NCBI RefSeq assembly: GCF_001194135.2
Contig: NC_068994.1
Coordinates: 22,869,812 to 22,933,811, forward strand
Direction of reading: 5' to 3'
DNA: 64,000 nucleotides
Source: Octopus bimaculoides
Lineage: Eukaryota
In this document: positions 13,711 through 63,527 of the stretch, piece by piece
How the letters are laid out: each line of letters begins with the position of its first letter
Numbering within the stretch: the stretch's first letter is position 1
Notes under the pieces: generated by a model
Seen by the model: the letters and a program-made list of their open reading frames with translations, nothing else
Databases searched by the model: none
What the model was told of the DNA's origin: nothing
Position numbers and translations under genes: made by a program

Positions 13711-13935
13711 AAAGCAGTGAACTAGCAGAATTGTTAGCATGCTGGGCAAAATGCTTAATGGCAATTTGTCTGTTTTTATGTTCTGAGTTCAAATTCTGTC
13801 AAGGTTGACTTTGCTTTTCATCGTTCCAGAGTTGATAAAGTACCAGATGAACACGGGTTGATGTAATCGACTTATCCCCTTGCCTGAAGTTGTTAGCTTT
13901 ATGCTAAAGTTTTAAACTATTGTTATTATTATTAG
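13711..13935 (+). mobile_element. SINE family B (gagctggcagaatcgttagc head, (TAT)n tail)
   Basis: Homologous to the copies at 14258, 15649, 22112, 31218, 40465 and 52885. Confidence 0.85.
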
Positions 13936-19900: not shown

Positions 19901-20670
19901 NNNNNNNNNNNNNNNNNNNNNNNNNNNNNNNNNNNNNNNNNNNNNNNNNNNNNNNNNNNNNNNNNNNNNNNNNNNNNNNNNNNNNNNNNNNNNNNNNNNN
20001 NNNNNNNNNNNNNNNNNNNNNNNNNNNNNNNNNNNNNNNNNNNNNNNNNNNNNNNNNNNNNNNNNNNNNNNGACATATAAGGTGTCAAGATTCAGTAATC
20101 TTTTGGCTATCAAATAAACTCTATTTTCATTTACATATTTTCTACGTTATCTCAACAACCAGCTTTAGTTATTTGAAAGATACTACTCTAAAACGACCAG
20201 GTTTCATTAAAAAGTGAAAATAGTTTCACACTTTCAATTTGAACCAAAATTACAAGAGTGATGATGTGTGAATAATGAAAGTAATGTTTCTCCAAATTAG
20301 TGACATCTGTGCTATAATAAAGAAAGCTGCTTATTAAAGGCTACCAAATAAACTATGATTTTGGCACAAGTCTTTTTTACTCCTAAAATAACCTTGGAAA
20401 CGAGGTCAGGTTGCACAATTTTGAGGTCATTTTTGGGCAATATTTCGATTTGCTTCTAATATTTCACTTTTGTCAGCTGTTTCATGCATGCATAAAATTC
20501 TACTCAGACAAACATTTATGAAAATGTACACTTAAATATTGTATTAAAATAAGCGACAACCAAAACAATTTCATTAAAAGACATCCATTTCTTCATGTTA
20601 TGAGGAAATACAGTCACTCTCTCTCTCTCACTTGCTCATGCACACATACATGCAAAAAAGATGTGCATAC

Positions 20671-22690
20671 ATATCATTCACACATGGTAGTGTATGAATA
20701 GTGTTCTTAAGGTCACCATTTACTCACTTGCGACCACTTCTAGGCTTTGTCACTAATTCAGTTTGTAACCAAATTAGATAATGTTTGCATTTTTAGATTG
20801 GTTACATCCTAAGTTACATTTTACAACTACAAAATTTGGAAATTGCTTTGGTAGAAAAAAAGTTTCAGTAAAATATGTGAGGTCAAAAACGGGAGAGTAA
20901 CGCTTGAAATCGACTTTGGGTCCAAATAATTTTTTTTTTAAAGAAATCTATAGTTTATTTTAGCTTTTATGATAGATCTCAGTGAGAGGAATCTATCCAT
21001 GTTAGTTATATGCAAAAATATTCATTAGAAAAAAGTACTGAGGTAAAAACTGGTGCAAAAAAAAAAACAAAGGAAATGCCTAAAATTGAGTCTGGCTCCA
21101 AATATTATTATTCTTTCAAAAGAAATCTATATTTAAATGCAACTTTTCTGATAGATCTCCATTAGATGAATCCAATGATGCCAATTTTGTCCAAAAAAAA
21201 AAATTTTTAATAAAATAAATACTATTGGGGTAAAATGTGCTGAAAACAGAGGCAACGCCTAGGATCAAATTCAGAACCTAAAAAGTTTTTTTTCTTACCT
21301 CATATGATAGAATTCATCAAGACAAGTGTCACGGTGCTAATCTTTTCAAAAAATATTCACATATGGTAGTGTGTGAATAACATTCTTAAGGTTAACATTT
21401 ACCCATGACTACTAGGTTTTTGTTACTAACTCAGTTTTTAACCAAATTAGATGATATTTACATTTTTAGATTGATCACATCATAAGCTATATTTCGAGCT
21501 AACAAAATCTGAAAATGGGTTCAGTAGAAAAAAAAGTTTGAGTCAAATATGTGAGGTGAAAAATGAGAGAATAATGCCTGAAATCGACTTTGAGTCCAAA
21601 TATTTTGTTTTTTTTTAACTAAATCTATATTTTATTTTAACTTATATGATAAATCTCTATAACAGGAATCTATCCATGTTAGTTATATGCAAAAATATTC
21701 AGTAGAAAAAGTACTGAGGTAAAAGTTGGCGATAAGAAAGGAGATTAATGCCTGAAATCAACTTTGACTCCATATATTATTCTTCTTTCAAAAGAAAACT
21801 ATATTTAAATTTAACTTTTCTGATAGGTCTTGACTACAAAAATCCCATGATGCTAATTATATACATAAAAAATTTAAATAAAAAAACTACTGGGGCCAAA
21901 TGTACCAAAAACAGTGATAACACCTAAAAGCAAATTCAAAACCTAAACATTTTGTTTTTGTTTAGCTCATATGATAGAACTCATCAAGACAAGTGGCGTG
22001 GTGCTAATCTTTTCAAAAAATATTCAAAATGAAAAAAGTTATTATATAAGCTAAATGTGCCAAAAGTACGTAAAACAATTTTCAAGTAATATCGTTACTT
22101 AATACAGTACTAAGACGACGAGCTGGCAGAGTCGTTAACATGCAGGTTGAAAGCTTTGTGGCATTTCGTCTGTTTCTATGTTCTGAGTTCAAATTCCGCC
22201 AAGGTCGTCTTTGCTTTTTATCTTTTCGGTACTCGATAAAATGAGTATCATCTGAGCACTGAGGTCGATGTAATCAACTTCCCTCCCCTCTGGATTTAAT
22301 GGCCTTCTGACAAAATTGGAAACCAACATTGCAAAATGTTTGATTCAATTCAGTATTTAGGTATCTTGCAAAGATCTACCTCATATTCATAGAATACACT
22401 ATACTGTAGTACATATATATTGTAATAAATATCATTCACACATGGCAGAGTGTGAATAATATTCCTAAGGTCAACATTTACTCACTCACGACCACATCTA
22501 ATCTTTGTCACTAATTCAGTGTTTTACCAAATTTGATGATGTTTATACATGGTTAGAGTGGTCACCTCCTAAGCTACATTTTGAGCTACAAAATTTGAAA
22601 TTTCAGTAGTAAAAGTTCAGTAGAAAAAAAGATGAGATTTCAAATATCTGGAGGTCAAAAAGGGGAGAATGACACCTGAAATTGACTTCA
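20671..22690. repeat. Two tandem units of about 670-680 bp plus a partial third, each with internal sub-repeats
   Basis: atatcattcacacatggtag at 20671, re-aligning at 21355 and 22429. Each full unit contains three related blocks (gaggt.aaaa...aaatctata...atgataga). Confidence 0.9.
22112..22330 (+). mobile_element. SINE family B
   Basis: gacgagctggcagagtcgttaac...ttctgagttcaaattccgcc. Confidence 0.85.
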
Positions 22691-24034
22691 GGGATATACA
22701 CATGACGCTGCATACATACTTTTGTAAATACACACATACACATAAGTAACTTTTAAAATACTTATGAAGGGAAACAAAGGTGACAGTGACGAATACGTAG
22801 CTTTAAAGAGAGATGGGGTAAGTTGACAACAATTGATGACAAGTGGACTCTTTTCTGCTGTCCATCATAAATAAACACACACACACACACATCTTTATTG
22901 CAGAAAAATGTTACTGAGGTTTAAAGTTTAATCATTTTCACCTAATCAGAAAACAGGATTTAGAAGCTAGCATTTTCTGCGTTATAGTTGTCTATCACAA
23001 AACGAAACCAAAATCATTATACAAGGAGGAATTTTTATTAAACAAATGAACGCAAAGCGTTATGACGACCTAAGTTGTAAGAACTTCTGAAGTTTTAACA
23101 AGTCTTTTGCTTGCTTTTTAAACTTTAATTCAATATTAAGAGTATCAGAATTTAGATGATTATTTCTTAGGATAATTTGACAAGGTCTTTGCTTTCAGAT
23201 AGTATGATTGGATTTTCAGACTAACAAAATTTAGATTTTTTATTTTCAGGCAAGTTGACAAGGACAGTAGCTGAATTGCAGGCTTTATTTTTTTTATTTT
23301 ACATGAATTTCGACTAACAAACTAACATTTCCCCCAACAAGAGCAAGTGGCTCCTCCTACCTCACTGTGGATGCATTGGCTATTTTTGCATTTTTAAAAA
23401 TCTTATATTAGCCATGGCTTTACTATTCCTATGATCATATTATCTTCTTACTATAATAGTTGATATATTCTCATACCTCTTCTTGCTAACTCTTCTTATT
23501 ATATATAGATATAACTCATTTATTTCTTGATTTTATAATAAAATTAGTATTCACTATTATATAGAAAATTATCAAAATAATTTTTTAAAGTAAATTTTAA
23601 AATTTTTTGTATTTTTTAATAGATGAGCTTGAAATCAGTTTATGGAAAGTGGATTATATTTTATTTATAGAAATTGGAGTTTTAAATTGGTTTATGAGAA
23701 TTAGATNNNNNNNNNNNNNNNNNNNNNNNNNNNNNNNNNNNNNNNNNNNNNNNNNNNNNNNNNNNNNNNNNNNNNNNNNNNNNNNNNNNNNNNNNNNNNN
23801 NNNNNNNNNNNNNNNNNNNNNNNNNNNNNNNNNNNNNNNNTTTTATATTAGCCAATGCAGTGAAACCCTGTCCAGATAATTTTTTTTTATTTTTAGAATT
23901 TAAGAAAAAATATGTGAAAATTAAAAAAACAAAATAAACTTATTTTAATTCAATCAACAATGAAAAATAATTCAAATATTTTTTAACAAAAGAATATTTA
24001 TTAGTTTTATTATATTGCCTGGAAACAAAAGTGG

Positions 24035-25125: not shown

Positions 25126-26611
25126 GTACATGAAAGATAAGGTGTGTGTGTGTGTTTGTGAGTGAGTGAGTACCACTTGTACATTCATGCAAAAAAATAC
25201 CTACATGAGAACACACACCTTTACTCTCTCTCTCTCTCTTGCACATGCACACATGCCCATTTCATAAACACATACATACATCTTTCACTCTCTGCTTTCA
25301 CTTCAAAGCAAATGTTGCCTTTTCCCTTTCTCCTCTCTTTCAATTTCTGCTCTCTTCAAAGCATAAAGAAATAAAAAAAATTTATGTAAATTAAGAAACA
25401 ATCATGATCCCATATGATTGAGTTGACAACTTTGCTGCTTCAAACGAAAGTATGCCATTAAATAACTTCTTTTGGCACACACACGCTCTAGGTAAAACTT
25501 CTGTATGAATTAAGATATTTCTTGCTGTGTGCACACGCAAAATTACAGCTCAAATCCAATTGAAATAACCTTTTTTTATTCTGTAATTTGTGTTTGTGAT
25601 AAACTGATCTTTGATATAAACTTAAAAGGAAGTTCTCCCAGAAATCTTGTCCTTTACTTGTTGTTTTAGAATGTCCAGGGTGACATTTGCACCCCTACCT
25701 TATTTTTTTCCTAAAATTTCTTCTGATTCCTGTTTTCGATACAGGAGATTATGATTTCGCCCAAAAAACATGTTCTCAATATTTTGATTTTCTCCCTTGC
25801 CATCCCAATTTNNNNNNNNNNNNNNNNNNNNNNNNNNNNNNNNNNNNNNNNNNNNNNNNNNNNNNNNNNNNNNNNNNNNNNNNNNNNNNNNNNNNNNNNN
25901 NNNNNNNNNNNNNNNNNNNNNNNNNNNNNNNNNNNNNNNNNNNNNNNNNNNNNNNNNNNNNNNNNNNNNNNNNNNNNNNNNNNNNNNNNNNNNNNNNNNN
26001 NNNNNNNNNNNNNNNNNNNNNNNNNNNNNNNNNNNNNNNNNNNNNNNNNNNNNNNNNNNNNNNNNNNNNNNNNNNNNNNNNNNNNNNNNNNNNNNNNNNN
26101 NNNNNNNNNNNNNNNNNNNNNNNNNNNNNNNNNNNNNNNNNNNNNNNNGTGAAACACTGGGAGATTTTAGCTTTTTGAAAGCTGGTAGGTGATGGGTGGG
26201 TGAGGTGGAGGAAGGGGCATTGAGTGTTTCTTCAAGAAAAATTAAACTTACAAAAAATATATATTTCCCAGATTCATAATCTCTTTATTTTTCTATGTGG
26301 ATTAAAAAAAAAATTCCAAAAAAGTTACAAATTAAAAAATTGCAGTGTAGATGGAGGGAAATTAACATTTTGAAAATGTGATTTCTGGGCAAAATTTCTT
26401 TAACCTCCTTTTATACATTGAAACAATATATAGTTTGTGATCCTTCTTAAGAGCAGAAAGCACTTTCATGCAAATCGTACCCTCTACCCCTTCACATCTA
26501 AACAAACAATAACTTCTATTATGCCAGTAATCCAGCTCACTATATATCAGCAGTGTCAATTCTGCCCGTAAGAAATGGACAAATAATACAATGTGGCTGT
26601 AGGTCATAACA

Positions 26612-27484: not shown

Positions 27485-27698
27485 NNNNNNNNNNNNNNNN
27501 NNNNNNNNNNNNNNNNNNNNNNNNNNNNNNNNNNNNNNNNNNNNNNNNNNNNNNNNNNNNNNNNNNNNNNNNNNNNNNNNNNNNNNNNNNNNNNNNNNNN
27601 NNNNNNNNNNNNNNNNNNNNNNNNNNNNNNNNNNNNNNNNNNNNNNNNNNNNNNNNNNNNNNNNNNNNNNNNNNNNNNNNNNNNNNNNNNNNNNNNNN

Positions 27699-27945
27699 CT
27701 GGAAGAAGCCTGTTGTATATATATATAAAAATATATATATGTATTTCTGTCTGTGTTTGTCCCCCCCCCCATTGCTTGACAACTGATGTTCGTTTGTTTA
27801 CAGCCCCATAGTATAGCAGTTCAGCAAAAGAGACCAGTAGAATAAGTCCTAGGCTTACAAAGAGTAAGTTCTGGGGTTGATTTGTTTGATTAAAGATGGT
27901 GCTCCAGCATGGCCTCAGTCAAATGACTGAAACGAATAAAAGAAT
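27699..27945 (+). mobile_element. SINE family A, 3' half
   Basis: gtttgtcccc...gcttgacaac...cagtcaaatgactgaaac. The 5' part is probably in the gap. Confidence 0.85.
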
Positions 27946-28030
27946 ATTAATATATATATATATATATTAGACAAAATGAGATAACAAAGTAGTTTTCAGG
28001 ACATTTATAAGGAAAAAGATATAGATATAG

Positions 28031-29345: not shown

Positions 29346-29483
29346 NNNNNNNNNNNNNNNNNNNNNNNNNNNNNNNNNNNNNNNNNNNNNNNNNNNNNNN
29401 NNNNNNNNNNNNNNNNNNNNNNNNNNNNNNNNNNNNNNNNNNNNNNNNNNNNNNNNNNNNNNNNNNNNNNNNNNNNNNNNNNN

Positions 29484-30699: not shown

Positions 30700-31780
30700 A
30701 TTACAAGGGTGAAGGAGATGCCTTTGAAAGAAGTAGTTACATAGATATCAAGTTACTGGACCAGTTTATGAAAATCACTGAAAGTGTCAAAAGTTCATTT
30801 AATTAGAGAGTGACTTAACCTAGATGAAATACAATCTGGTTTCATACCAGGGAGAAGTAGTACTGATGCTCTTTTTATAGTTCAGCAACTACAGAAGTAG
30901 TTAGCAAAAAGTAAACCACTGTATTTGACATTTGTTGACCTGGAGAGAGCCTTTGACAGGGTGCCTTGATCCCTCATCTAGCAGTAGCTAGGAATAGAAG
31001 AATGGCTAGTGAGAGCTGTTCAAGCCATGTACAGGGATGCTGTTAGCAAAGTGAAGGTTAAAAATGAGTAGAGCTGTGAATTTAGTGCGCAGGTAGGAGT
31101 TCATCAGTGTTGGTTATCAGTCCATTCTTATTTATGATAGTCCATAATCAAAGAATTTAAGACCAGTTGCCCATGGAAACTTCTCTATGCTGACGACCTT
31201 GTTATTATAGTTGAAAGTTAAGGTGGTGAGCTGGCAGAATTGTTAGCTGCCTTTACATTCTGAGTTCAAATTCTGCTGGGGTCAACTTTTCCTTTCACCT
31301 TCTCAGAGTTGAGAAAATAAGCACCAGTTGAACACTGAGTTGGATGTAATCGACTTACCCCCTCCCCCAAACCTGCTGACCTTCTGCCAAAATTTGAAAT
31401 CATTATAACTGAAAGTGTAATAGAATTAGAATTAAAATTCCCAGTATGGAAACAAAACCTGGGATCATAGGGTCTTAAGGTTAACTTAGCAAAGATTAAA
31501 ATTCTAATTAGCAGGGAAACAGACAGAACACTAAACTGTTTAGGTAAATGATCCAGTTCCATATGTAGACAAAGTGTTCATAGAAATTCCATATGGTGTG
31601 CTCAGTGCAAACTATGGACAAATAAGAGGTGCAGTGGAATCAAAGGAAGGTTAACAGAGAAAGTAGAATTTGTTTGTGGCAGATGTGAAGAAGCAATAAA
31701 TGATAAGAACACATGGGAAATAAATGTTCTGAAATCCCCAGGAGGCTTCCTAGATGTAGTAGATAGTTTCTGTTATCTAG
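30700..31780 (+). mobile_element. RTE LINE, RT fragment interrupted by a SINE
   Basis: Decayed GFIPGRSSTDALFIV...FVDLERAFDRVP...LLYADDLV. It resumes after the SINE with an apparent 15-bp TSD (attatagttgaaagt / attataactgaaagt). Confidence 0.9.
31218..31406 (+). mobile_element. SINE family B
   Basis: ggtggtgagctggcagaattgttagc..., nested in the RTE. Confidence 0.85.
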
Positions 31781-34628: not shown

Positions 34629-34737
34629 GTCTACCGTTCGCTCTGAGGGAGAGACCCTTTATTGGGTTTTTAAGGTGTGATCTAAAATAAAGATATGATT
34701 TTCTTCATACATATTATTGATTATTATTATTATTATT

Positions 34738-35119
34738 ATTCTTTTATTTGTTTCAGTCATATGACTGTAGCCATGCTGGAGCACCACCTTTAGTTGAACA
34801 AACCGACCCCAGGACTTATTCTTTGTAAGCCTAATACTTATTCTGTCTGTCACTTTTGCTGAACCACAAGGTTACGGGGACGTAAACATACCAATATCAG
34901 TTGTCAAGTGATGGTGGGGGGACAAACACAGACACACACATATATATATATATATGACAGGCTCCTTTCAGTTTCCGTCTACTAAATCTACTCACAAGGC
35001 TTTGGTCAGCCCGAAGCTATAGTAGAAGACACTTGTCCAAGGTGCCACGCTGTGGGACTGAACCTGGGACCATGTGGTTGGTAAGCAAGCTACATACCAC
35101 ACAGCCACTCCTGTGCCTA
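34738..35119 (-). mobile_element. SINE family A, full length
   Basis: Complete head, CORE, microsatellite and tail structure. Confidence 0.92.
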
Positions 35120-43824: not shown

Positions 43825-45441
43825 CTAAATACAGAGAAAAGTTGCTCCTTGAATTGTTGGGAAAACTGGTGCACCTGAATATAATTGTATGCTTGTAGGG
43901 TACATCTGAATAGTGGCAGGGTACATCTGAGTGTTATTAGCGGCAGAAATGAGGTCTGTTGTAGTAGGATGGGATGATGCAATATCTAGTTGTGGAGAAG
44001 TTTGCACTAATGTACCAGATGAAGTGTCAGAATGATGAGAATGAGCCAACACAGAATTTGCAGCCACTAGAGCAGTCGTAGGCGGTGCACTGTTGTCATT
44101 CATATGTTGTTGTTGCTGGTGATGATGATGAGAATGTAGCTGGATTAAATCACTATGTGAGTCGTTACTGGCATTATTGCTATCAGGTGAATTTCTACAA
44201 TCATCATTCATTTTGTTATTACATTTGTTGGCTCGAAGATGCCGTTCTAAATGATCTTTCCTTGCAAATGCAAACTGACAGGTACCACACTTGAATGGTC
44301 GCTCTCCAGTGTGAATTCGATGGTGGACTTTTAAGTGTGATCTTTCTAAGAATGTTTTATTGCAAAGACTGCAAGAGTAGAGCTTTTTGCCAAGATGAGA
44401 CCTCTGATGCCGTTTCCATTCGCCCCGGTCAGTAAACACCTGGGAACATATATTACATTTGAATGGTAATACAGCAGAATGAATCCGTTTATGTAAATCA
44501 TGATGGTTTCTTTGTGAATAGGCTTTCCAGCAGACATCACAACTGAGGGGATTATCGTTATTCTTCTCATTTGAGCTTTGTAAATGAGTTGAAGATGAAT
44601 TATTCAAAGGCTTGTCTGAATTGTTTAATGTCTTTCCATTGGAATGAATCCGTTGTCGGTGAACTGTCAGGTGCGTCCTTTGAGAGAAGCATTTTCCACA
44701 AGATTCACATTGAAAAGGATTTAAAGCCTTATGTATCCTTTTATGAACATCTTGGCTTAACTTAGCTCTTTGCGTAAACGTTTCCCAACAAACATCACAG
44801 TTAAATGGGTTTTGAATATGATGTAACTGATTTGTCGACACTGATGACGCTGATGATGATGATGAAGTTGACACTTTGCAGTTAGCTGTATGAGACAATG
44901 ATGGTAAAGAAGTTCCATGTGTTCTTAGATGTCTTGTAAGATCACCGTTGCGAGAAAATGAACAAGGACATATTTGGCATTTAAAAGGTTTATCATTTGC
45001 TGTTATAACTTTAGATGTTTTAGGTTTTGAGTAAGTTGATGCTTGATATGATGTACTATGTTCATGTGACATACTTGAATGACAAATAGATGATTTAGGA
45101 CTACCATTTGAAATAGTTTTCCCATGAATACCCATGTGCCTTGTTAAGTTACCATTTCGAGAAAAAGCATCTCCACACACTTGACATTTGAAAGGCTTTT
45201 CTCCACTGTGTGTAACTAAATGTTGTTTTAAATGAGCTTTTTGGGCAAAACATTTGTTACACAAATCACATGCATAAGGCTTATTAGGTACACTAAGATG
45301 ACTGTTGTCTCGGTAAGAAAGATCTAATGTTTGTTCTTGCTCATCTTGTGGTGAAAGTGCTCTTTCTTCATCATTTGGGCTATGAGAGCCATATTTGGAG
45401 AAGGATTTCCCACTAATGTTAACTACATAAGTTTTCTCCAT
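43825..45441 (-). CDS. C2H2 zinc-finger protein (about 9 fingers in dispersed groups), single coding exon
   Basis: Intact 538-aa ORF. Fingers include YACDLC...HLVTH, FKCQVC...HMGIH and YSCSLC...HHRIHTGERP, with a terminal C2HC-type finger, Ser-rich spacers and a His/Gln tract. Confidence 0.95.
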   Translation of the reverse strand: MEKTYVVNISGKSFSKYGSHSPNDEERALSPQDEQEQTLDLSYRDNSHLSVPNKPYACDLCNKCFAQKAHLKQHLVTHSGEKPFKCQVCGDAFSRNGNLTRHMGIHGKTISNGSPKSSICHSSMSHEHSTSYQASTYSKPKTSKVITANDKPFKCQICPCSFSRNGDLTRHLRTHGTSLPSLSHTANCKVSTSSSSSASSVSTNQLHHIQNPFNCDVCWETFTQRAKLSQDVHKRIHKALNPFQCESCGKCFSQRTHLTVHRQRIHSNGKTLNNSDKPLNNSSSTHLQSSNEKNNDNPLSCDVCWKAYSQRNHHDLHKRIHSAVLPFKCNICSQVFTDRGEWKRHQRSHLGKKLYSCSLCNKTFLERSHLKVHHRIHTGERPFKCGTCQFAFARKDHLERHLRANKCNNKMNDDCRNSPDSNNASNDSHSDLIQLHSHHHHQQQQHMNDNSAPPTTALVAANSVLAHSHHSDTSSGTLVQTSPQLDIASSHPTTTDLISAANNTQMYPATIQMYPTSIQLYSGAPVFPTIQGATFLCI

Positions 45442-46250
45442 TGACTTTCAAATCAATTAAATTTCTATCAATAGGTAAAAGTTTTAACTGATTTCTCAAC
45501 AACTAAGTTTAAATAATAAAAATAAGTTGTTGATCTAATAAACTAAAAAATAGTTATGAAGGGATTCTAACCTCTTTATTATTCTGTCTTTCATTTCATT
45601 TGGTTCATTAGTAATACTGAGACTTTGACTTGATTGCTTTTTGTGCCCCCAGAAATTCAAAATATAAACTGAATTTCAACAAATAAGGCATTAGATAAAT
45701 TTTTTTATAAACTTTGAAAAGTAATTGAACTGTTATACAACAAATTTTAAAATATTTTCCCAAATAGTCTAATAATTTGGACTAGAGCAAATGAGTTTGA
45801 AAAGTGATACATTTCAGTGGCAGTCATATTTTTCCTCCAAAACAATGTTAAATTATGCTGAAGAGTTTATAACTTTTATTTGTCTCATTTTCAAGCTTCT
45901 TTTATAAGTTTCTCCAACATGAATATCTGAAGAATGAAGAGGAAAATAAATGCTGAGATATTTAAATAAACTTTGTATTATTTTAACAAAAGAAAAATGC
46001 AATAATGCATGCTGGAAATGAAAATAATTTTTATTACAATATGAATTAGCAACTTTTCAACACTTAAAACCAGAGGAATTATCACCTATCAAAATAGAAG
46101 ATAATGTGATAGTTAAGTGATTTATTCAAGGACGATGGAAAACAATTACCATATTTGCTGGGTTTCTTACATTTGTTAAACTGGAAGTCTAAAAATTTCA
46201 TAAGCTAAAGAGGCAAAGAAAAAGAATTAGTTACATTACGCAGCATCATA

Positions 46251-46672
46251 AGTGCAGGCATAGCTGTGTGGTTGGAAAAGTTTGCTTCCCAACCAGGTGA
46301 TTTTAAGTTCATTCCCACTCTTCTGTTATAGCCCCAAGCTAGTCAGAACCTTGTGAGGGGATTTGGTGAAGGGAAACTGAAGGAGGCCTCTGTGTGTGTG
46401 TGTGTGTGTGTGTGTATAGGTATATGTATGTGCATGTACCCTTGTCTGGCATCATGTAATGATTGTAAGCAAGCATCACCATTAAACAAACAATGCTGTT
46501 TGTTTCCCGTCTTCTGTAAAAAAACATATCTGGCCATGGAGAAATATTACCTTGTTCAGAAACAGGTGAGGGTTGGTGATAGGAAGAGCATCCAGACAAA
46601 AAAAAATCTGCCTTTATGAATTCCATTTGACCCATTCAATCATGGAAAAGTGGGTGTATGATGATGATGATA
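46251..46672 (+). mobile_element. SINE with family-A head and RTE-like (GAT)n tail
   Basis: gtgcaggcatagctgtgtggtt head, (TG)n, then gggttggtgataggaagagcatccag...gatgatgat. Confidence 0.75.
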
Positions 46673-47084
46673 ATGTGACAATATGTTCTAGATTTACGCT
46701 ACAGACATTTTTTCAAATTGTGTTTATGTGGGGTGCAATGCAATTACCCAAATAAGTTACATCTAATTTATTGCCAAACTTGTTTTAATATACTGAAAGG
46801 TATTTGCATTTTTTGCAAAGTAGAACAGAGTTTTATGCAAGAGAGGTAATTGAATTTGTATATAATTTGTGTTTCTGAAAGATTAGAAATGAAGGGCCAA
46901 GTTTTAGGAATAGTGTCTTATAACTGAAACAACTGTGTGAGCTAGAAGAGATTGCAACTTTTTTGTGTAGTACTCACGTATCTAGCTAGCATTTAAGGGA
47001 CACATCAGTTTTGCAGTGTGCATATTGTAGGAGTTGTGTGTGCAGCTTTTTAGCAGCAAAAGAACATAGTATATTCTTTTACTA

Positions 47085-47420
47085 TGGTTGCACCTCACAT
47101 AGTTTAAGTCACTGGACTGCAGCCATGCTAGAATACCACCTTCAAGAGTTTAATCTATCATACTGATAGGGTTTTAATAAATTACTTAAAGATAGGGTTT
47201 TAATTATATCGATATCTATTTGTTGAATGATCAAGTTACAGGACATAACATAAACACAGCCACACACACACACACATATACACAATAGGTACAGTGTCTG
47301 TCAACCAAATTTCACTCACAAGTTATCGGTCAGCTTAAGGATACAGGAGACACTTAATGAAAGTGTTGTACAAAGGGATCATACCCAGAGCTGTGTGGTT
47401 GTGATATGGGGAACTTCTTA
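47085..47420 (-). mobile_element. SINE family A, decayed
   Basis: Homology to family A. Confidence 0.7.
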
Positions 47421-47857
47421 ACCATACAACATTTTGGGACCTCCCTGTATGATAATTTGTGTAATTTGTGCTAAAGAGTTTACTTTTGCAAATAAGTTAA
47501 TTTAGTTCCATGAAACATTATGAAATCATGTGGACATGTAAGACTTTTTCTATGCTCTCTGTTTCTATTATAGGACAGAAATCTTTACAAAATCCAAAAT
47601 GGAGGGGAATTTTTTGCTGTAGAACTGAAGAATGGTAGCTGGTTGAAGTTATTAAATTGGCAGATTTTGCCTCAACTCCTAACATTTCTAAGTAAATGTT
47701 ACCAACAATAAATATAATATGCTCTGTATCTATATATACTTTATTTTCTGTAACACTTCAGCATTTGAAGCTGTTGAATTTGTTCCAATTTATAAGGTTT
47801 ATACTTTCTATAAATCATTTGACACGAGCTGGAGTTCCGTTTATTTTATATATATAT

Positions 47858-48075: not shown

Positions 48076-49140
48076 NNNNNNNNNNNNNNNNNNNNNNNNN
48101 NNNNNNNNNNNNNNNNNNNNNNNNNNNNNNNNNNNNNNNNNNNNNNNNNNNNNNNNNNNNNNNNNNNNNNNNNNNNNNNNNNNNNNNNNNNNNNNNNNNN
48201 NNNNNNNNNNNNNNNNNNNNNNNNNNNNNNNNNNNNNNNNNNNNNNNNNNNNNNNNNNNNNNNNNNNNNNNNNNNNNNNNNNNNNNNNNNNNNNNNNNNN
48301 NNNNNNNNNNNNNNNNNNNNNNNNNNNNNNNNNNNNNNNNNNNNNNNNNNNNNNNNNNNNNNNNNNNNNNNNNNNNNNNNNNNNNNNNNNNNNNNNNNNN
48401 NNNNNNNNNNNNNNNNNNNNNNNNNNNNNNNNNNNNNNNNNNNNNNNNNNNNNNNNNNNNNNNNNNNNNNNNNNNNATTTTCTTCCTCTGTCTTCCTTTC
48501 CATTGGACTTTCCTCTGTTTTTGAAGAAGAGCATTGCTCGAAATGTTAAACCATCTTTCTTTCCTTCCCTGCTAATACTTTACATGTACCACGTCCTCAT
48601 GTTGTTGTTCTTTTTTGGTATTTTTCATATATATATATCAAAATAAGCAACAAGGATATTCAAGGTTAATGCAGTACGATTGTTTCATGTGACTCCATTT
48701 ATTTAAGCAATGTGAGCATTACATTAAATGTAAAATGCAGAGCAATCTTCAGCTGCACAAAGATACAGAAAATTTACTGAAATTTCATTTCAGTAGAAGG
48801 ACATATTATTGTAACTACATTTAAACAATCCAAGTGGGAAGAAAGAATACAAAAAACCATTTTGAATTAGCCAGACCATACAGGCTAGTAATTAATTCTA
48901 AGCAGAATTTTAACTGTCACTGATTTTATTTGTTTTTTTTTTTGTTTCATCTTATCAGATCTAGTGATTTAAAGCTTAAGAGGGCACCAGCCTTTTACAG
49001 ATAAGGAAAGGGAAGGGGTAAACAATATACATGGATATGGTTATAAAGATTCTTTTGGTTTTAGTGATACCACTATTTATTATAGGTTGGGGGTTTTTTC
49101 CTACTAGCAGACCAGTTTATAATGTAGCAGGGTAACAGTG

Positions 49141-51291: not shown

Positions 51292-51384
<93 letters not shown>
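51292..51384. repeat. (TG)n microsatellite, about 46 units
   Basis: Direct reading. Confidence 0.98.
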
Positions 51385-51387
<3 letters not shown>

Positions 51388-51489
51388 CAGACAGAGCGAG
51401 ATTAAGTCATCATTTTTTGAACTGGATTGACATGTGCAGTTATTGTAGAAGTGATATCATAATCAGTGAGTGTAGGATTGATCAGCAGA

Positions 51490-52200
51490 CAACATGGTGC
51501 TACTTGGCTCATTAGAAGGTGATTTCCAGCATGCACTGAATGGGTTTGCTGCCAAGTGCTGCAAGGCAGGGATAAGACATTTGTCCTCTCAAGAGAGTTT
51601 TCTCATTACGTTCTACATATTAGTGGAACATCATTTAGGTAAGGGGAAAAGTTTAAGAGTAGCAAGCCCGTATTCATGAGTGACAAGAAGCAGAGGCTGA
51701 ACTGGATGTTAGAATTGCAGGTGCTGGTACAATAATGCACCAGCTCCAGCATTTGCTCCTCAGAAGGCAAAAAAGATTGATAAAAAAACCAAACTTGCTC
51801 TCTTCAATTTGGTTTCTGTGCTTATCCTCACTCTATGATCATGAATGTTAGGTAATGACCAAGAGTGTAATTGTGGATACAAGCAGTCAAAATGGGGGTC
51901 CTTTGAAGGGTCTCTGGAGGAACATTATTTGTCAATAGGGTGAGGTGCTCAGAGATCAAGAAGTTTCTCCAGATAAAACTGCTCCTCTCCTAAATTGAGA
52001 GATCACAGCTCTAGTACTAAGGGCATGTGATTAGAATGTCAAAGGAAAGGATTGCAAGATGGATTCGTCAAGCCAAGCCAACAGGCAGAAGACCTAGGGA
52101 TAGATTGCCTCAGTTGGTCACACTCAGAATCCAGCTGGAAAGTGTAAAATTGGTTTTCTAATAGGACTTTATGGAGATGTTTAAGGACTCTACTCCCATC
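51490..52200 (+). mobile_element. RTE LINE 3' RT fragment
   Basis: DNMVLLGSLEGDFQHALNGFAAKC...LLS*IERSQL, and a PKGR..W region. Confidence 0.75.
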
Positions 52201-52884
52201 ACACAGGAATAGTGGGCAGAGAAAATAGAATGATATATGTGTAAACCTACATAGTAGACATACAATGACCAAAAAAATGAGCTACCTTAATTGATTTTCG
52301 ACTCTTAATGGTGTTCCATCAAGTGTCTACACCACTTGACCAATCTCACAGAAGCAAGTAGCTAATCTGTTTATATACATACCAAGTCTAGTCACTTCAG
52401 AGAACTACACATTTGCAAACACACACATATATATCTATATACGTACACATCTCTATATAATATATATTTGTGTGTATGTAATTTTTTGGACTAATAGGCA
52501 TTTGTCAATTGACAATAAAGACAAATACCAAATCCATCTTCTGTGTCATTAATTGATTATAATGTTTGTTTTTATGTTCAGTTTTAATAAATTAGGACTC
52601 AGATGTTCAGTAAACTGAATTAATTGCTCTTAAGCAACCAAGAAGCTGAGCATTACACAAATACCTGTACCCTTAAATACAATTCTCTAACAGATAGTGA
52701 CATAGTGTCTGACAAAACTATACCTTTGAATTATAGGTACAATCCATATGATGGGCTCCTATGCTGTTTGTCTACCTACCTGATTTCAACATGAAGTGTA
52801 GGTCAAACTAAAGGTCTAGAAAATGGCATTTGCTTATGATACCCTGCAGTGAAATTGAAGCTGTGAACACTTACACCATTTGGC

Positions 52885-53070
52885 ATGTATATTGATTTCA
52901 AATTTTGGCACAAGGCCTGCAATTTCAGGAGACAGTGTAAGTCAATCACATCAACCCCAGTTCTCACTTTTTATCAATCCCCAAAAAATGAAAGGCGAAG
53001 TTGACCATGACAGAATTTGAACTTAGAATGTGAAGATGTACAAAATACTGTTAAGCTTGTTGCCTTCTCA
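52885..53070 (-). mobile_element. SINE family B
   Basis: Reverse complement of ttctaagttcaaattctgtc...ggggttgatg...tgcaggccttgtgcc. Confidence 0.78.
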
Positions 53071-53152
53071 GCAAATATATTAACAATACACCCATATATT
53101 TATATGTTAATAAATAATGACAAAAAGACATGAGTTATGTAATCATTTTCAT

Positions 53153-53220
53153 TAGCTTACAGCTGCTTCTGCTATAAGTAACTGTTTTAGTGTGATAAAC
53201 ATTTAGCTTCTTCAGAGCCA
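53153..53220 (-). ncRNA. Minimal type-I hammerhead motif with core substitution
   Basis: UGGCU-CUGAAGA-A-GCUA(long loop)UAGC-A-GAAGC-AGCU-GUA|AGCUA. Stem I is 5 bp (1 GU), and A15.1 is replaced by G. Confidence 0.65.
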
Positions 53221-53499
53221 TTTATGACCATGAACAACCACAAGGCCTAATTAATGATACTCCTTCTAATAATCAATCTCTAAACATCCAGGCAATGGTT
53301 TCTTAAGCAAACACCTCTGCAGGTGATAAGTATTGGAGATGTTAAGAATAGTAATGAGCCTAAAACATACAATTTCAAAAATATCAATGATTGCCTGTAA
53401 AATGGCTATTGTCTTGCTCGAAACATAGTATATAGATGTAGAGCATGTATATAATATGAATGCTCTAGGGAACACATTGGATCTACAGTAAACATTTAT

Positions 53500-53830
53500 C
53501 TTTTTATCTTTTACTTGTTTCAGTCACTAGACAGTGACCATGTTTGGACATTGTCTTGAAAGGTTTTAGTCAAACAAATCAACCCCAGGACTTGCCAAAC
53601 TGATAGGTCATAGGGATGTAAACACACCAATACTAGCTGTCAAGCAGCAGCAGGGTCAAACACAGACACACACAATGGGTTACTTTCAGTTTCTGTTTAT
53701 CAAATCCACTCACAAGGCTTTGGTCAGCTCAAAGCTATTCTAGAAGACACTAGTCCAAGGTGCCATGCAGTGGAACTGAACCCAGAACCATGTGGTTGGG
53801 AAGCAAACTTCTTACCACACAGCCTGCACC
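53500..53830 (-). mobile_element. SINE family A
   Basis: Homology to family A. Confidence 0.88.
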
Positions 53831-54513
53831 AATACATAAAAGTTTTTTCAAGCAACTGTGCAATCTTTTAAAAATCCAAAGTTGGTGTACTCAACTTTAC
53901 TAGTTGAATACATGTTGCAACTGAAAAATTCAAACATTGAGTATGGCTTGTAGTGGAACACTAAAATTTGCAATTCTGTACATAGCAGAACAGAGGCCAT
54001 GCTGATTATCCACAAGCAATAGAAATTTTACTCTCCAATACATAACTTCTAACTAAATGAAACAAGGTGATCATCAAGTACAACCACAATATTCTTTATA
54101 CTTTTAAATTCAATTTAAAAAGAAAATATGAGAACTAACTTAATCACATCTCATAATAGACAATTCAGATACAAGGCTTGATTCCATCCCTGTTTCAACA
54201 AGTTTAGTGCCGTCGTGTTCTTAAAAAGCTTCCATTTTTGTTACATCATTCAAATTTTTTTACTTTACTTTATTTCATTTTAGTGTATAATTTATATAAA
54301 TATGCATTACTTCTAACATTTGATAGGTCTGTTTAAATATCCTTATAACTTATAATATGTTGTTTCAGTTAGCTATCATCTGATCTATGTCTATATATAT
54401 ACAGAGAGAGAGAGAGATGTATATATAATTTAAAATATATGCACTTCCTTGCTCTTATCTATACAATTTGTATGTTAAATATGAGTCTGTCTACATACAC
54501 AAGGTGCATATAA

Positions 54514-54514
<1 letters not shown>

Positions 54515-54569
<55 letters not shown>
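54515..54569. repeat. (TA)n microsatellite
   Basis: Direct reading. Confidence 0.98.
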
Positions 54570-54571
<2 letters not shown>

Positions 54572-54582
54572 ATATACATAAA

Positions 54583-55361
54583 TGTCCATGTTCTTTTGCC
54601 ACATCATGTACCCAGTTATGTATCTATATGTACATGTAGATGAAGGTATGTACATACATGTACATATATATGCATATACTCATATATTGTTTGTATCACA
54701 ACAGAACGCACGTGTTAACCTTTATACAGTAAGTTTTAACTATTTTTCTAACGCGACTCTCTCTATCTCTATATCTATCTCTTGTTACTCGTCCTTCGCC
54801 TCTCACCGTTACAACTACTATCTCTCTCTCTCTCTTCCTCTCGTTGCTCACATTTATTCTACTTCCTCTCCTTCTTTTCCCTCTGCTACTCTTACTCTCT
54901 CTCTTTACACAGCCTTGGTCACGTGTGTCCGGCTGCTATTTCTTTTCGTTCTTGGACTCCCCAAGCTCGCACGTACTTCTTTGCCCCTCCTGTTCGTGCT
55001 TCACAGCATTCAATACATACACATTTCATGTCTGGCTGTACAGCCTTTTTGCTTGTTTGTTCATTCACCGTTTCGTTTTCCGTCTGCCACTACCCTCCAC
55101 GAAAATAATTTAATTTGTGTTCGTGGGAAGAACCATTTCAACGATGCGTACTGCCTTAATTCTTCGAAACGCCGGTGTTTTAATGGTGGCAGCTGATGAA
55201 GGAGATGTTTCTATGTGGCTTGCTTGTTTGTTGTACCTTGTTTAATCATTTTGTCCATGTTCTTTTGTCACGTCATGTACCCAGTTATGTATCTATATGT
55301 ACATGTAGATGAAGGTATGTATATACATGTACATATATATGCATATACTCATATATTGTTT
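54583..55361 (+). mobile_element. Non-coding 669-bp unit with 110-bp terminal direct repeat (retrozyme/solo-pLTR-like)
   Basis: 54583-54692 equals 55252-55361 at 107/110 positions. It has (TA)-rich sequence on both sides, retains CpGs, and contains the hammerhead at 55132-55205. Confidence 0.8.
55132..55205 (+). ncRNA. Candidate non-circularly permuted hammerhead ribozyme
   Basis: GCGU-A|CUGCC (55146-55155), UCUUC-GAA-ACGC (55161-55172) and GGCAG-CUGAUGA-A-GGAGA (55188-55205). All three stems pair in register with the core. Predicted cleavage is after 55150. Confidence 0.72.
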
Positions 55362-55384
55362 ATATATATATATATATATATATG

Positions 55385-55554
55385 TTCTTTTATATTTTTA
55401 TTTGTTTCAGTCATTTGACTGGGGCCATGCAGGTGCACCGCCTTTAGTAGAAAAAATCGACCCCAGGACTAATTCTTTGTAAGCCTAGTACTTATTCTAT
55501 CGGTCTCTCTTGCCGAATCGCTAAGTGACACACATGTTGGAGGGACAAACACAA

Positions 55555-55560
<6 letters not shown>
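55385..55560 (-). mobile_element. SINE family A, 3' part (young)
   Basis: tttgtttcagtcatttgactg...gcctagtacttattctatcggtctc, with CpGs retained. Confidence 0.9.
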
Positions 55561-55594
<34 letters not shown>

Positions 55595-56231
55595 CCCATA
55601 TGTTCTGTCCGATCTTACCTTTTTAAAAATTGAATGAAATTTAATGTTAAATGTCGTAAAAAATGCTTTGGTAAAAGGGAAAAAGCTCAACCACTACCAA
55701 GAAGGGAACTTCATGGGAAAAAAGTTCTTCTCTCAATTTGGTGGTATTGCAAAGGAGTAATTGACTTTGAATTCTTACCACCTAATTGAGAGAAGAAAAA
55801 AAGCTTTGAAGAAAAAAAGACCCGCTTTAGTGAATCAAAAAGGAGTAATATTTCATCAGGACAATGTGCAACCCCACACAGCAAAGATCACATCACAGAA
55901 AATCGAAGAGCTTGGTTGGGAAAAAATTCCTCATCCACCTTATTCTCCCGACTTTGCTCCTTCAGACTACCATTTGTTTCATAGTTTACAGAATCATTTG
56001 GGGGACATAACTTTCGCAAGCCAGGAGGAGGTTGAAACTGACATTTCAGAGTTCTTCGCTTTGAAACCAAAAGAGTTTTACATTGATGGGATTAAAAAAC
56101 TCGTAAATAGATGGAAGGAAGTCATAGATAATCAAGGAAAGTACATTGATGATTAAATTTCAATTAAATATAACATTTGATCACTTGTTTTCTTAATTCA
56201 AAATTCGGACAGAACTTATGGGTTGACCTGA
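55595..56231 (+). mobile_element. Internally deleted mariner with intact C-terminal frame
   Basis: FHQDNVQPH, PYSPDFAPSDYHLF, GIKKLVNRW. TIR cccata.gttctgtccga is present at both ends. Confidence 0.92.
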
Positions 56232-56559
56232 TATATTAATATNNNNNNNNNNNNNNNNNNNNNNNNNNNNNNNNNNNNNNNNNNNNNNNNNNNNNNNNNN
56301 NNNNNNNNNNNNNNNNNNNNNNNNNNNNNNNNNNNNNNNNNNNNNNNNNNNNNNNNNNNNNNNNNNNNNNNNNNNNNNNNNNNNNNNNNNNNNNNNNNAT
56401 ATATATTTATAACCCATGCTAGCATGGAAAGCGGACGTTAAACGATGATGATGATATAATATTAGGGAATGTAAAATTCCAAACATACAGGAATATTCAA
56501 TTTAGTAATACCAAATTGTATTTTATAATAAATAATATATGTATATAAATATAACTAAG

Positions 56560-57085
56560 AGAAGAACCATCTTACACCATCCACTGCAGTCATGTCTCTT
56601 CGCATCTCTATCTGTCACTGTCCTTCACTCTCAAAAACCTGTCCACACAGCCCTCTTCAACACTCCTGTTATCTTTTTATCCACTTTTTTGTCCCTTGGT
56701 GGTATGCCCTGACACTTTCATTGCCATTATCCTTTCTCCATTTCCCCCTGGGATAGCCATGTATTTTCTCTACAGCAAGATACCAGCTCCTACCACTCTA
56801 TTATAGTTTACTCTCTCTACACTTGACACAAAGCCACTTCCCACAATACTGCAACCTCCTCCATTTGATCAAGGGGGTCTTGTTTTCTGTCTCACAAGTG
56901 CTGGTACCATGAAAAATGTACCTGGTACACCCTGTGGTTGGCATTAGGAAAGACATTCACCAGTGAAAAACATGTCAAAGCAGACACTGGAGCTCAACGC
57001 AGTCTTCTGGCTCATCCTCTTCTGTTGAACTGTTTAACCCATGCCAGCATGAGTTAGACAGATGTTAAATAAGGATGATGGTGAT
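56560..57085 (+). mobile_element. RTE-type 3' UTR fragment
   Basis: Inverse homology to 59130-59720. Ends aacccatgccagcatg...gatgatggtgat. Confidence 0.7.
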
Positions 57086-57959
57086 TATACACACACACAT
57101 CCCCCACCACTGCTGGATAACTGGTGCTAATTTGTTAATGTCCAATAACTTAGTGGTTTGTCAAGAGTGACTGATAGAATAAGTATCAAACTTTAAAGAA
57201 ATAAATACTAGGCTGATTAGTTTGACTAAATCTTTCAAAAAGGTGCCTCAGCAGACCTACAGTCCAATGAAAACAAGTAAAAGATGATAATTATCATGAA
57301 CTCTCTCATTGTCAGACAATGTGAGTTCTGCAATTTCTTGCTGAACAACCACATAGTTGATTTGTTGACAGTGATCAAATGTTTGTAAGCACATAAGCTC
57401 CACTCCTTCCATCAAATCAACATTATCTATACAGGTGCATGATATGCCACACGTTAGATGATGAAATAATTGCAGAGCAACATGAAATAGTGTGTTTTGC
57501 TCAAGAACACAATGTGTGTGTGTGTGTGTATCTATCTATATATGACATCAAACGATGATGATGATATGCACACACATCATTTTAAACATCCATTTTTCAA
57601 TGCTTGTATGGGTCAACTGGAATTCATTGAAACAGACTTTCTACAGCTGGATGTCTTTCCTGTCACAAACTGTCGCTCTTTCCTAAATACAGTAATATTC
57701 CCACATGTATTGTGACATTCATTTACAACTATTGCAGAATGTCAAGACAAAGAGGCACACACACACATATATATACAATTTACACACACATATTTATATA
57801 TCATATATATTAATGTTTGTTTTTATGTTCAGTTATGATAAAAACAATTTTACATTAATCTGACGAATTACTCTATACTTTGGTGGAGTACAAATTTATT
57901 ATTTTTCGTATGTGTATTTCGTGTGCAAGATTCTTGATGTGGATACGTGTGTTGAAAGA

Positions 57960-58130: not shown

Positions 58131-58169
58131 AAATTTATTATTCTTATACAAGAATATTGTTGGCAATGA

Positions 58170-58510
58170 CTTGTGGTTTTCAACCAGGGTCCATATGGCC
58201 CCCGAGAGTCCATATACGATTTTTGGGGGTCCACATAGCAAAATAGTAAATTAAGGATTCACAATAGTATTTTAAGGGCCCCTGAAAAAAATTTTGCTTT
58301 TGATGTATTTATTGGAAGAAGCTGCTAGGCTTCTTTCTCTAACATTTTGCATTGTTCAACCTATTACAAGTTAATGTGTGTTAAACAAAATAGGAATTTT
58401 GAAAGAAATTTCTATAAAACTAGGTTTTAAACATCAAATGGTTATGGGGTCCCACAAGAATAAAATAGTAATGAAAAGGGTCCATAGAAAAAAATGATTG
58501 AGAACCCCTG
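58170..58510. mobile_element. hAT (Charlie-like) MITE
   Basis: gtggttttcaacc / gattgagaacccctg ends. Same family as 16422-16763. Confidence 0.85.
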
Positions 58511-58901
58511 CTGTAAACAAATGGGAGTAAATACACTGAGTTAGCTCACAGTGCCACTTAACCAGACTGTGGGACGCATGCATTTCAGAGTGTTTATCTC
58601 CGCTTCCGCCATAGAGACTGGAAAGGGAGATTCTGCAAGATGACACGAGAGATAGATCCCTCTTATGATATTCCTGTCATTGTTCAATGACTGGTTGCAC
58701 TATTCAATGGCTTGTCACACCATATTTAATTTATGGCGAGCTGCTGTATAATGCAACCAGTCATTGACTGATGATGGGAATATCATAAGATGGACCTGTC
58801 TCCTGTATCAGTTTGCAGTGCCTACCTTTCCAGTCTCTGTGGCTGAAGAGGAGATGGTGCTGTGAGCTGACTCGGTGTATTTACCACCCATTTGTCTAGA
58901 G
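58511..58901. mobile_element. Foldback element, almost entirely palindromic
   Basis: 58511-58699 pairs with 58752-58901. Perfect 14- and 15-bp cores, mostly transition mismatches, and one insertion of about 38 nt in the left arm. Confidence 0.88.
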
Positions 58902-59059
58902 AGAGAAATTTTCTCCATGACAAAATACAGTGAATGACTTTCTTATGGGATCGAATATGCCTCAAGCATATTTGAACTGGCAACATGTCTGTAATTATAC
59001 ACATCACTGCTTAGCACTGTCGCCTATGTGTGTGTGTGTATATAAAATCATCATCAGGA

Positions 59060-60190
59060 TCATTTACAGTCTGTTTTCCATACTGATGTGGATTGGGCAG
59101 TTAGATAGGATCTGGCAACTTTCAGGACTGCATTGAGCTCCAATGTCTGTTTTGGCATGGTTCCTAGAGCCAGATGCCCTTCTTAATACTAACTGCTTTA
59201 CAATCTGTACTGAGTGCTTTTTTTCATGTCACCAGCACAAGTAGGAGTCACAAAGTAACTTGCACAATAGCAAAAGAAAAAGAAAAAGCACTCTGGACTA
59301 AGTGGCAAGGGTGCATTTGAGAGGAGGAGGTGGAATTTTGCCAGGTGTCGAGAGGCAAAAGTACGAAAAAGGGATAAGCACAAGTGACTTGCTACAGAGG
59401 AAAAACATGGCTACCCTGCATTATATAAGGGTGGATGAGAGTAGCAGGGAAGAAGATAAAGATGGTAATGATGTGGTACCAGAGCGAACTCTTGAGGTAC
59501 AAGAAGTTGAACATGAGAGAGGACATAGACAGTGAATCAAAATCAGGGAAAGAGAGCAGGTAGAAGTGAATGTAGTAAGTGATAAACAAGGATGGAGCTG
59601 CAGTATGGATAGGAGGTAAGGTGAGAGAGAGATAACTCAGGAAGATAGATAAATCAGAAAGTATGGGGAAGATGTGCAAGGTGTAAGAATGGTGGGGAGG
59701 GAGATGTAAAGGTACATAAGGCTGGCCATAGGGAGTGGGGTTTGATGGTGGAAATAAGAGGGCGTTGGGAATGATAGCAGATATGAGAAGGTTAAGGATG
59801 AGGAGAGGAAGAGATAATTGTAGGCAAAGAAAAGTGGTCTGTGAAAATAGTATGGGAAGGGATGGACAGAAGAAGGTAACTGGTTATGTAAAAAATCATG
59901 GGGAGGGATGCAATATATGCTCTCAAGTGATTACAGCAACCGAGTAGTACCATAGATAGAACTGTGGTAGAGAGATAAGGTATGGGTAATGCTTGATAGG
60001 TCAGAATGGGTGTAGGGGTAGGGCCTAGCTCGTACAAGCAAACAAAATACTTTCAGGACCTCGTTTTTGCTGCAATGGAGGGGTCTTCTTGAGCACTGAA
60101 AATCGCCAATCACCTTTGTCATTTCCTCTGTGAGGTTCAGCATCTTCAGATCAGCCTTCACTACTTCATCACGTCTTTCTGGATTTCTCT
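59060..60190 (-). mobile_element. RTE LINE 3' end with long pyrimidine-rich 3' UTR
   Basis: DEVVKADLKMLNLTEEMTK at about 60110-60180. The UTR is homologous to 56560-57085. Confidence 0.7.
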
Positions 60191-63164: not shown

Positions 63165-63527
63165 TTTTTCTTTTATTCATTTTAGTCATTGGACAGTGGC
63201 CATGAAGGAGCATTGCTTAGTAGGATTTTTAGTTGAACGAATTGGCACCAGTACTTTTTCTTTTTAAGCCTGGTACTTTTTTTATTGGTCTCTTTTACTG
63301 AACTGCTAAGTTATGTGGACATAAGCACACCAACACGAGTTGTCAAGTGGTGGTGGGGGACAAACATAGACATAAACACACACACCCATATATGATGAGC
63401 TTCTTTCACTTTCCATCTACCAGATTCACTCAAAGGACTTTGGTTGGCCCAAGGCTAAAGTTGAAGTCACTTACCCAAAGTGCCAGTTGTGGAACTGAAC
63501 CCGGAACCGTGTGGTTGAGAAGCAACT
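63165..63527 (-). mobile_element. SINE family A
   Basis: Homology to family A. Confidence 0.88.

Follow-up and report, generated by a model that had tools for sequence, protein, structure and literature searches.

The hammerhead-like motif described here from an intergenic interval of Octopus bimaculoides is very probably a chance juxtaposition of three hammerhead blocks, in the order S>G>C, without selected ribozyme function. Such a match would have arisen in fast-evolving, repeat-rich intergenic DNA of O. bimaculoides and would presumably not be used in vivo; if the + strand is transcribed, the active pseudoknotted fold would be expected to form a minor species, since stem II is marginal, a stronger shifted register is at hand and a segment further upstream pairs better with the stem I strand. 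What counts against chance is the low rate of such matches per window, the window being the whole stretch of 64,000 nucleotides that was analysed, together with a detailed likeness to validated type-SGC RNAs. A real ribozyme of some kind, repeat-borne or single-copy, is unlikely, and what remains of our expectation goes to more exotic readings.

As it stands, the case is an example of a familiar trap: with a core as small as that of the hammerhead, tens of complete and well-paired matches are to be expected in a large genome, whatever the block order. As a result, comparative support is needed before such a match is called a ribozyme. It is very improbable that the motif is an expressed, self-cleaving type-SGC hammerhead, born de novo in a young O. 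bimaculoides insertion or carried by an undescribed cephalopod repeat family; if it were, no earlier case of a non-circularly permuted ribozyme encoded by a cellular (animal) genome would precede it. A real ribozyme at this place would carry such RNAs from uncultured RNA replicons over to an animal genome and would show that the knotted hammerhead can arise independently.

Elements and block order of the motif

Read directly from the + strand, the motif occupies 55146-55205 and runs GCGUA-CUGCC, a 5-nt linker, UCUUC-GAAA-CGC, 15 nt, and GGCAG-CUGAUGA-A-GGAGA, with its predicted scissile bond between A55150 and C55151. Its parts, and the two upstream segments that pair with them, are the following.

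55084..55090 (+): competitor CUGCCAC, forming 7 bp with GUGGCAG 55186-92
55132..55142 (+): upstream arm ACCAUU..AAC, pairing with 55177-87 and turning stem III into a 13-bp interrupted hairpin
55146..55150 (+): 5' part of block S, made of GCGU (55146-55149; the stem III 3' strand including U16.1, which pairs with ACGC 55169-72) and A17, i.e., A55150
55151..55155 (+): 3' part of block S, CUGCC, which follows the cleavage site on its 3' side and forms one strand of stem I
55156..55160 (+): linker UUAAU, 5 nt, bridging the distal ends of stems I and II
55161..55172 (+): block G, made of UCUUC 55161-65 (stem II strand), GAAA 55166-69 (G12, A13, A14, A15.1) and CGC 55170-72 (stem III strand)
55173..55187 (+): connector CGGUGUUUUAAUGGU, 15 nt between blocks G and C, pairing with upstream 55132-42 and so lengthening stem III
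55188..55205 (+): block C, made of GGCAG 55188-92 (stem I strand), CUGAUGA 55193-99 (C3-A9), the inserted A55200 and GGAGA 55201-05 (stem II strand, G10.1 first)

Every hammerhead element lies where the first-pass annotation had placed it, with base-for-base agreement when 54900-55500 is read, and all the pairings that it listed were verified. Stem I (CUGCC/GGCAG) has five Watson-Crick base pairs worth -6.8 kcal/mol, stem II (UCUUC/GGAGA) has 5 bp including one GU and is worth only -2.7 kcal/mol, and stem III (GCGU/ACGC) has 4 bp worth -3.4 kcal/mol, beyond which AAC 55140-42 pairs with GUU 55177-79 and ACCAUU 55132-37 with AAUGGU 55182-87. In hammerhead numbering, the motif provides C3-A9, G12-A14, the A15.1-U16.1 pair, H17 as an A, and the C1.1-G2.1 and G10.1-C11.1 pairs. 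Stems I, II and III cross pairwise and give a doubly pseudoknotted fold. The annotation was accordingly right that the order [UH]>[GAAA]>[CUGAUGA], here S>G>C, lies beyond any circular permutation and needs a pseudoknot, and right as well that the linker, UUAAU at 55156-60, connects stem I to stem II at their tips.

Eckert, Friedrich, Weinberg & Weinberg (NAR 2023; PMC10085705) divide hammerheads into three blocks, called S for the cleavage site, G for GAAA and C for CUGAnGA, in which notation types I, II and III read CGS, GSC and SCG. The natural non-circularly permuted hammerheads to which the annotation referred do exist: these authors reported them in 2023, mainly as 'type SGC' (PMC10085705). 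Type SGC is defined by S, G and C blocks that are uninterrupted save for insertions of 1-2 nt at most, and the set counts 583 sequences, all metatranscriptomic, with covariation in all stems (PMC10085705). Its members are cut where predicted, lose activity when G5 is mutated and show the effects of disruptive and compensatory mutations; the linker from stem I to stem II is typically of 3 nt, and the known ribozymes sit in putative circular RNAs, where they are associated with hairpin ribozymes (PMC10085705). The search of RefSeq release 85 by the same authors, in which false positives were expected and covariation was required for acceptance, placed no such RNA in the genome of any known organism, bar the doubtful GCS-1 of Caballeronia peredens (PMC10085705). 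Our literature search found the term 'type-SGC' in no paper other than this one.

Set beside this definition, the octopus motif has the conserved core (CUGAUGA, GAAA, the A55169-U55149 pair and A55150) and the blocks in the order S (55146-55), G (55161-72) and C (55188-205), the last of which contains a single extra nucleotide, A55200. All three stems can form, though stem II is marginal and has a stronger shifted register, and the short stretch linking stem I to stem II is of the same kind, 5 nt here against a typical 3 nt. For comparison, SGC-1, SGC-2 and SGC-3 were rebuilt from the oligonucleotide table of PMC10085705 and set against the octopus motif feature by feature rather than through a family covariance model. 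In each of the three rebuilt RNAs, stems I and II measure 5 bp, the linker is 3 nt long, the clamp comprises ~7-8 bp and one inserted U follows CUGAUGA; because they too carry one nucleotide at this place, the A55200 insertion is no disqualifier. The S>G>C topology of the octopus motif is the published type SGC and is not new, and an unusual strand order of this sort calls for comparison with the SGC/CSG/GCS nomenclature of 2023 before any novelty is claimed for it.

Genomic setting and the search for copies

The window is AT-rich (33.5% G+C) and holds microsatellites and assembly gaps. At 3220-4833 (+) and 43825-45441 (-) it carries two intact C2H2 zinc-finger ORFs, each a single exon, which encode 537 and 538 aa; the latter is encoded exactly on CM046614.1 of GCA_001194135.2, where the motif site falls at about 22,924,943-22,925,016. 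Besides this zinc-finger gene no gene is called in 33825-55441, and the motif is therefore intergenic, some 10 kb away from it. The segments that matter for the locus, and the repeats and gaps seen elsewhere in the window, are listed below.

54697-55251: T/C-rich 555-bp block that holds the motif, 67% T+C on the + strand, unique within the window
54583-54696 and 55252-55365: direct repeats of ~115 bp, 96.5% identical, flanking the 555-bp block (whole context 54583..55365)
52277..56598: 4.3-kb segment without counterpart in O. vulgaris and O. sinensis, holding the motif block
45442-47847 and 51328-52276: aligned flank, first side
56599-57344, 57347-57781 and 58151-59526: aligned flank, other side
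11694-12022, 27814-27967 (-), 34736-35106, ~53507-53838, 55366-55523 and 63171-63525: SINE-like copies
13745-13916, 15748-15853, 15932-16078, 22181-22338 and 31251-31407: copies of a second dispersed repeat
2700-3075, 19901-20071, 23707-23840, 25812-26148, 27485-27698, 29346-29483, 48076-48476 and 56243-56398: N runs

The eight N runs are assembly gaps, and several of the long listed ORFs merely span them. The SINE-like element measures ~370 bp; its several copies have diverged to 64-86% identity, and many of them contain a TA microsatellite. The second dispersed repeat, at 52877-53064, shows ~70% identity between copies, which are all on the opposite strand. A mariner/Tc1-type transposase remnant at 55634-56156 (+) gives a weak DDE_3 Pfam match and runs into the gap at 56243-56398, and its peptide, ...KKVLLSIWWYCKGVIDFEFLPPN, is one that we take by eye to be mariner-like.

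The zinc-finger protein of 43825-45441 is matched by an orthologue of 97% identity in O. vulgaris and by a member of the same cluster in O. sinensis, and these led to the orthologous loci: in O. vulgaris (L002) and O. sinensis (L003), 10 kb to either side of the gene were aligned to the window. On both sides of 52277-56598 the flanks are collinear at 86-92% identity. The segment itself, with its SINE-like copies, dispersed repeat, TA microsatellites, mariner-type transposase remnant, assembly gap and motif block, has no counterpart at the orthologous site of either species, where ~1 kb of unrelated sequence is found instead (4749-3767 in L002 and 4735-3737 in L003). The motif strings are absent from both loci, and a sensitive BLAST of the 555-bp block against them returned CT/GA dinucleotide runs only. 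From the alignments, 52277-56598 is a product of lineage-specific turnover, by insertion or deletion, in a repeat-rich interval and is not itself a conserved element, a reading that follows from the lack of a counterpart in two species despite collinear flanks.

The search for relatives of the motif was equally barren within its range. Rfam gave no match at gathering score over the whole window; at E<=10, on both strands of 54600-55700, it gave no ribozyme family and only sub-threshold miRNA-like matches on TA-rich palindromes, so the Rfam comparison to which the first-pass annotation had looked brought it no support. Covariation across genomic copies, which it had also named as a check, found nothing to work on, there being no homologue in the window or at the two orthologous loci. 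No second copy of 54697-55251 exists in the window, self-BLAST yielding nothing past ~20-mers, and the searches with the encoded ORFs, in libraries of 5.8 billion or 1.84 billion proteins, were no more productive: no homologues were returned for the 204-aa ORF 54582-55196, itself absent from the records, or for the 43-aa and 42-aa frames that span the motif. Homologues with covariation, as type SGC has, were thus found neither in the window and the two orthologous loci nor by the ORF-based protein searches. A decayed coding sequence over the motif was considered and rejected, since the six-frame translations look non-coding and the ORFs are without homologues. The copy search covered 64 kb and two orthologous loci; a low- or mid-copy family may exist elsewhere in the genome, and the motif may be transcribed.

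In metazoans, hammerheads are reportedly repeat-borne as a rule, according to de la Pena and co-workers on retrozymes and PLEs, and the 555-bp block with its repeats could be read as one copy of a low- or mid-copy, mobile or duplicated O. bimaculoides element whose RNA is processed by a type-SGC hammerhead, just as retrozymes and Penelope-like elements employ type I/III hammerheads. In favour of this, the interval around the block is lineage-specific and rich in insertions, and the direct repeats on either side of the block are 96.5% identical and start with TG. We nevertheless find this quite improbable. No other copy is present in 64 kb and two 21-kb orthologous loci, the motif is internal only and offers no two cleavage sites for excision of a unit, and the repeats are TA-rich microsatellite-like sequence. 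The survey of known genomes in RefSeq release 85, which may or may not include octopus, found none (PMC10085705). The ~115-bp repeats, which are TA-rich and palindromic, recur with a period of 669 bp and give sub-threshold mir-297-like Rfam matches, are most likely a partial tandem duplication. Their reading as LTRs or as a retrozyme was tried and set aside: by eye there is no primer-binding-site/polypurine-tract signature, the ends run into microsatellite, and the motif lies outside the repeats.

Chance expectation and competing folds

How often chance alone would supply such a motif was estimated with a descriptor that asks for stem I of 5 bp, stem II of 5 bp, stem III of 3 bp plus A15.1-U16.1, CUGAnGA, GAAA and UH, and that tolerates 0-1 inserted nucleotide behind A9, a single GU in each stem at most and gaps no longer than 60 nt; it was run for all six block orders on both strands. 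On the 64-kb window the site at 55146-55205 is its sole match. With 719 permuted cores of the same composition as decoys on the real window, 2 matches were obtained, i.e., 0.0028 per window, and a first-order Markov null with the dinucleotide content of the window gave 89 matches in 2,426 Mb, or 0.0023 per window in any order (CGS 19, SCG 18, SGC 17, GCS 16, CSG 10, GSC 9). The Markov rate for the SGC order is 0.0004 per window, and about 4 of the 17 SGC matches are as compact as the octopus motif. For one 64-kb window, then, the motif is improbable, with p of ~0.002 in any order and ~0.0004 in the SGC order. In random sequence of the size of the octopus genome, ~90 descriptor matches, 17 of them SGC, are expected, and a survey in which numerous windows are read for motifs of numerous kinds is bound to come across some of them.

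The published RNAs possess one more helix. Placed around block C, this fourth helix holds stems I and II together at their other ends as a clamp, and in SGC-3 its disruption abolishes cleavage, which compensation restores (PMC10085705). No such clamp is found in the octopus motif: the best duplex between the connector (55173-87) and 55206-40 is worth -3.9 kcal/mol, a value that 65% of shuffles equal, against -9.2 kcal/mol for the clamp of SGC-1 and -8.1 kcal/mol for that of SGC-3. The connector position, which in published type-SGC RNAs holds a clamp strand, is in octopus an extension of stem III.

The remaining helices have strong competitors. A shifted register of stem II, UUCUUCG 55160-66/UGAAGGA 55197-203, is worth -5.1 against -2.7 kcal/mol; the MFE structure contains it, and G12, G8 and A9 are occupied by it. 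In the MFE structure of the 201-nt RNA 55080-55280, the competitor at 55084-90 captures the stem I strand, and the pair probability of stem I falls to 0.005. The 111-nt motif RNA is less stable than 191 of its 200 dinucleotide shuffles (z = +1.55; z = +0.3 for the opposite strand), and the extended stem III hairpin reaches -10.0 kcal/mol. When nested ensembles were computed for constructs of three lengths, the pair probability of no hammerhead stem exceeded 6%, figures that show strong competition and not impossibility, as nested-fold calculations cannot score the pseudoknotted fold.

A single-copy, lineage-specific type-SGC hammerhead, transcribed and self-cleaving in vivo, would draw on the full core, the three stems and a geometry close to that of validated SGC RNAs, as well as on the chance rate of ~0.0004-0.002 per window. 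It is highly improbable all the same: the motif is unconserved, it has no clamp helix, its stem II is weak, its folds compete, no annotated transcript covers it, and tens of chance matches are expected per genome. Taken as a whole, the first-pass annotation stands as a structural reading. Its step from structure to a ribozyme at this locus has no independent support: no homologue, and hence no covariation, was found, the segment is absent from the orthologous site of two related species, there is no fourth helix, stem II is weak and out-competed, and chance matches are expected by the tens across the genome.

The 669-bp period also invites a comparison with replicating RNAs. An endogenised viroid-like circular RNA of more than unit length, with a 669-nt unit at 54583-55251 and its first 115 nt repeated, would account for the 1.17-unit arrangement and would be in keeping with the putative circular RNAs in which known type-SGC ribozymes sit; the 669-nt unit, moreover, folds better than its shuffles (z = -3.7). 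We hold it extremely improbable, as Rfam finds no second ribozyme on either strand and there is accordingly no partner ribozyme as in a rolling-circle replicon, the unit is T/C-rich low-complexity sequence, and the stems are unrelated to those of HRIMA-1 (AUGUU/AACAU there, CUGCC/GGCAG in octopus). A viroid-like rod was rejected outright, for the 669-nt fold is not rod-like and much of its z comes from TA palindromes in the repeat.

Finally, the annotation had noted that a fully extended stem III leaves no linker to reach stem I, which is correct (the hairpin abuts the stem I strand with zero spacer), and had offered as ways out that the extended stem III and the hammerhead alternate or that CUGAUGA comes from a second molecule or a neighbouring repeat. 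The -10 kcal/mol hairpin does make the two folds partly mutually exclusive, but such a switch or trans arrangement is barely credible: the partial second copy at 55252-55365 does not carry the motif, so that no neighbouring copy with block C is there to lend the strand, competing structures are typical of random sequence, the region is less structured than its shuffles, and no sign of a ligand- or protein-controlled switch is seen. A chance juxtaposition is the reading that we retain.

Likeness to known hammerheads

Canonical hammerheads form an unknotted three-way junction whose blocks follow one another cyclically as C>G>S; they are found at conserved loci or in numerous copies, and the Rfam models detect them. 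With them (Rfam RF00163, RF02276 and RF00008) the octopus motif shares the catalytic core and the logic of three helices, and with the repeat-borne hammerheads of metazoans it shares an animal genome and repeat-rich surroundings. It differs from canonical hammerheads in its non-cyclic S>G>C order, its single copy and its lack of an Rfam match, and on the grounds of block order and Rfam it belongs to none of types I, II and III.

GCS-1 of Caballeronia peredens, the lone type-GCS candidate, offers a parallel in circumstance, for it is likewise a single genomic pattern of non-circularly permuted order, without covariation and with no evident biological rationale. Unlike the octopus motif, which we have as sequence only, GCS-1 was assayed and cleaved slowly in vitro, at 0.014 per min; its biological significance is unclear according to its own authors (PMC10085705). 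By analogy with GCS-1, a lone candidate without covariation that did cleave in vitro, a trimmed construct of the octopus motif could conceivably show some Mg2+-dependent cleavage after A55150 at high Mg2+, an outcome that we regard as doubtful but not far-fetched, and such cleavage would not by itself establish biological relevance.

In the HRIMA-1 consensus, stem I is invariably AUGUU/AACAU, and the segments GGACC-GAAA-CAGU and CUGAUGAUGGUCC are conserved (PMC10085705). The octopus motif falls outside it, with stems CUGCC/GGCAG, UCUUC/GGAGA and GCGU/ACGC, no hairpin or other ribozyme match nearby and a location in a DNA genome. An exact HRIMA-1 pattern found no match in metagenome contigs, and viral contigs yielded nothing. 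A shorter pattern met 50 loci in the metagenome contigs, none with the GGACCGAAAC partner within 35 nt upstream, and we judge, without a computed expectation, that a pattern of 17 bases would meet them by chance in so large a collection. The absence of HRIMA-1 from DNA metagenome and viral collections agrees with the finding that its associated hairpin ribozymes were never seen as DNA (PMC10085705).

It is to type SGC that the octopus motif comes closest. The published RNAs have a 7-8-bp clamp helix where the octopus motif has none, they number 583 metatranscriptome sequences against one DNA copy without homologue in an animal genome, and they differ from it by a linker of 3 nt instead of 5 and by unrelated stem sequences. 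As in type SGC/HRIMA-1, the octopus motif nonetheless combines the S>G>C block order and the conserved core with 5-bp stems I and II, a short linker between them, the G10.1-C11.1 pair and a single insertion after A9.
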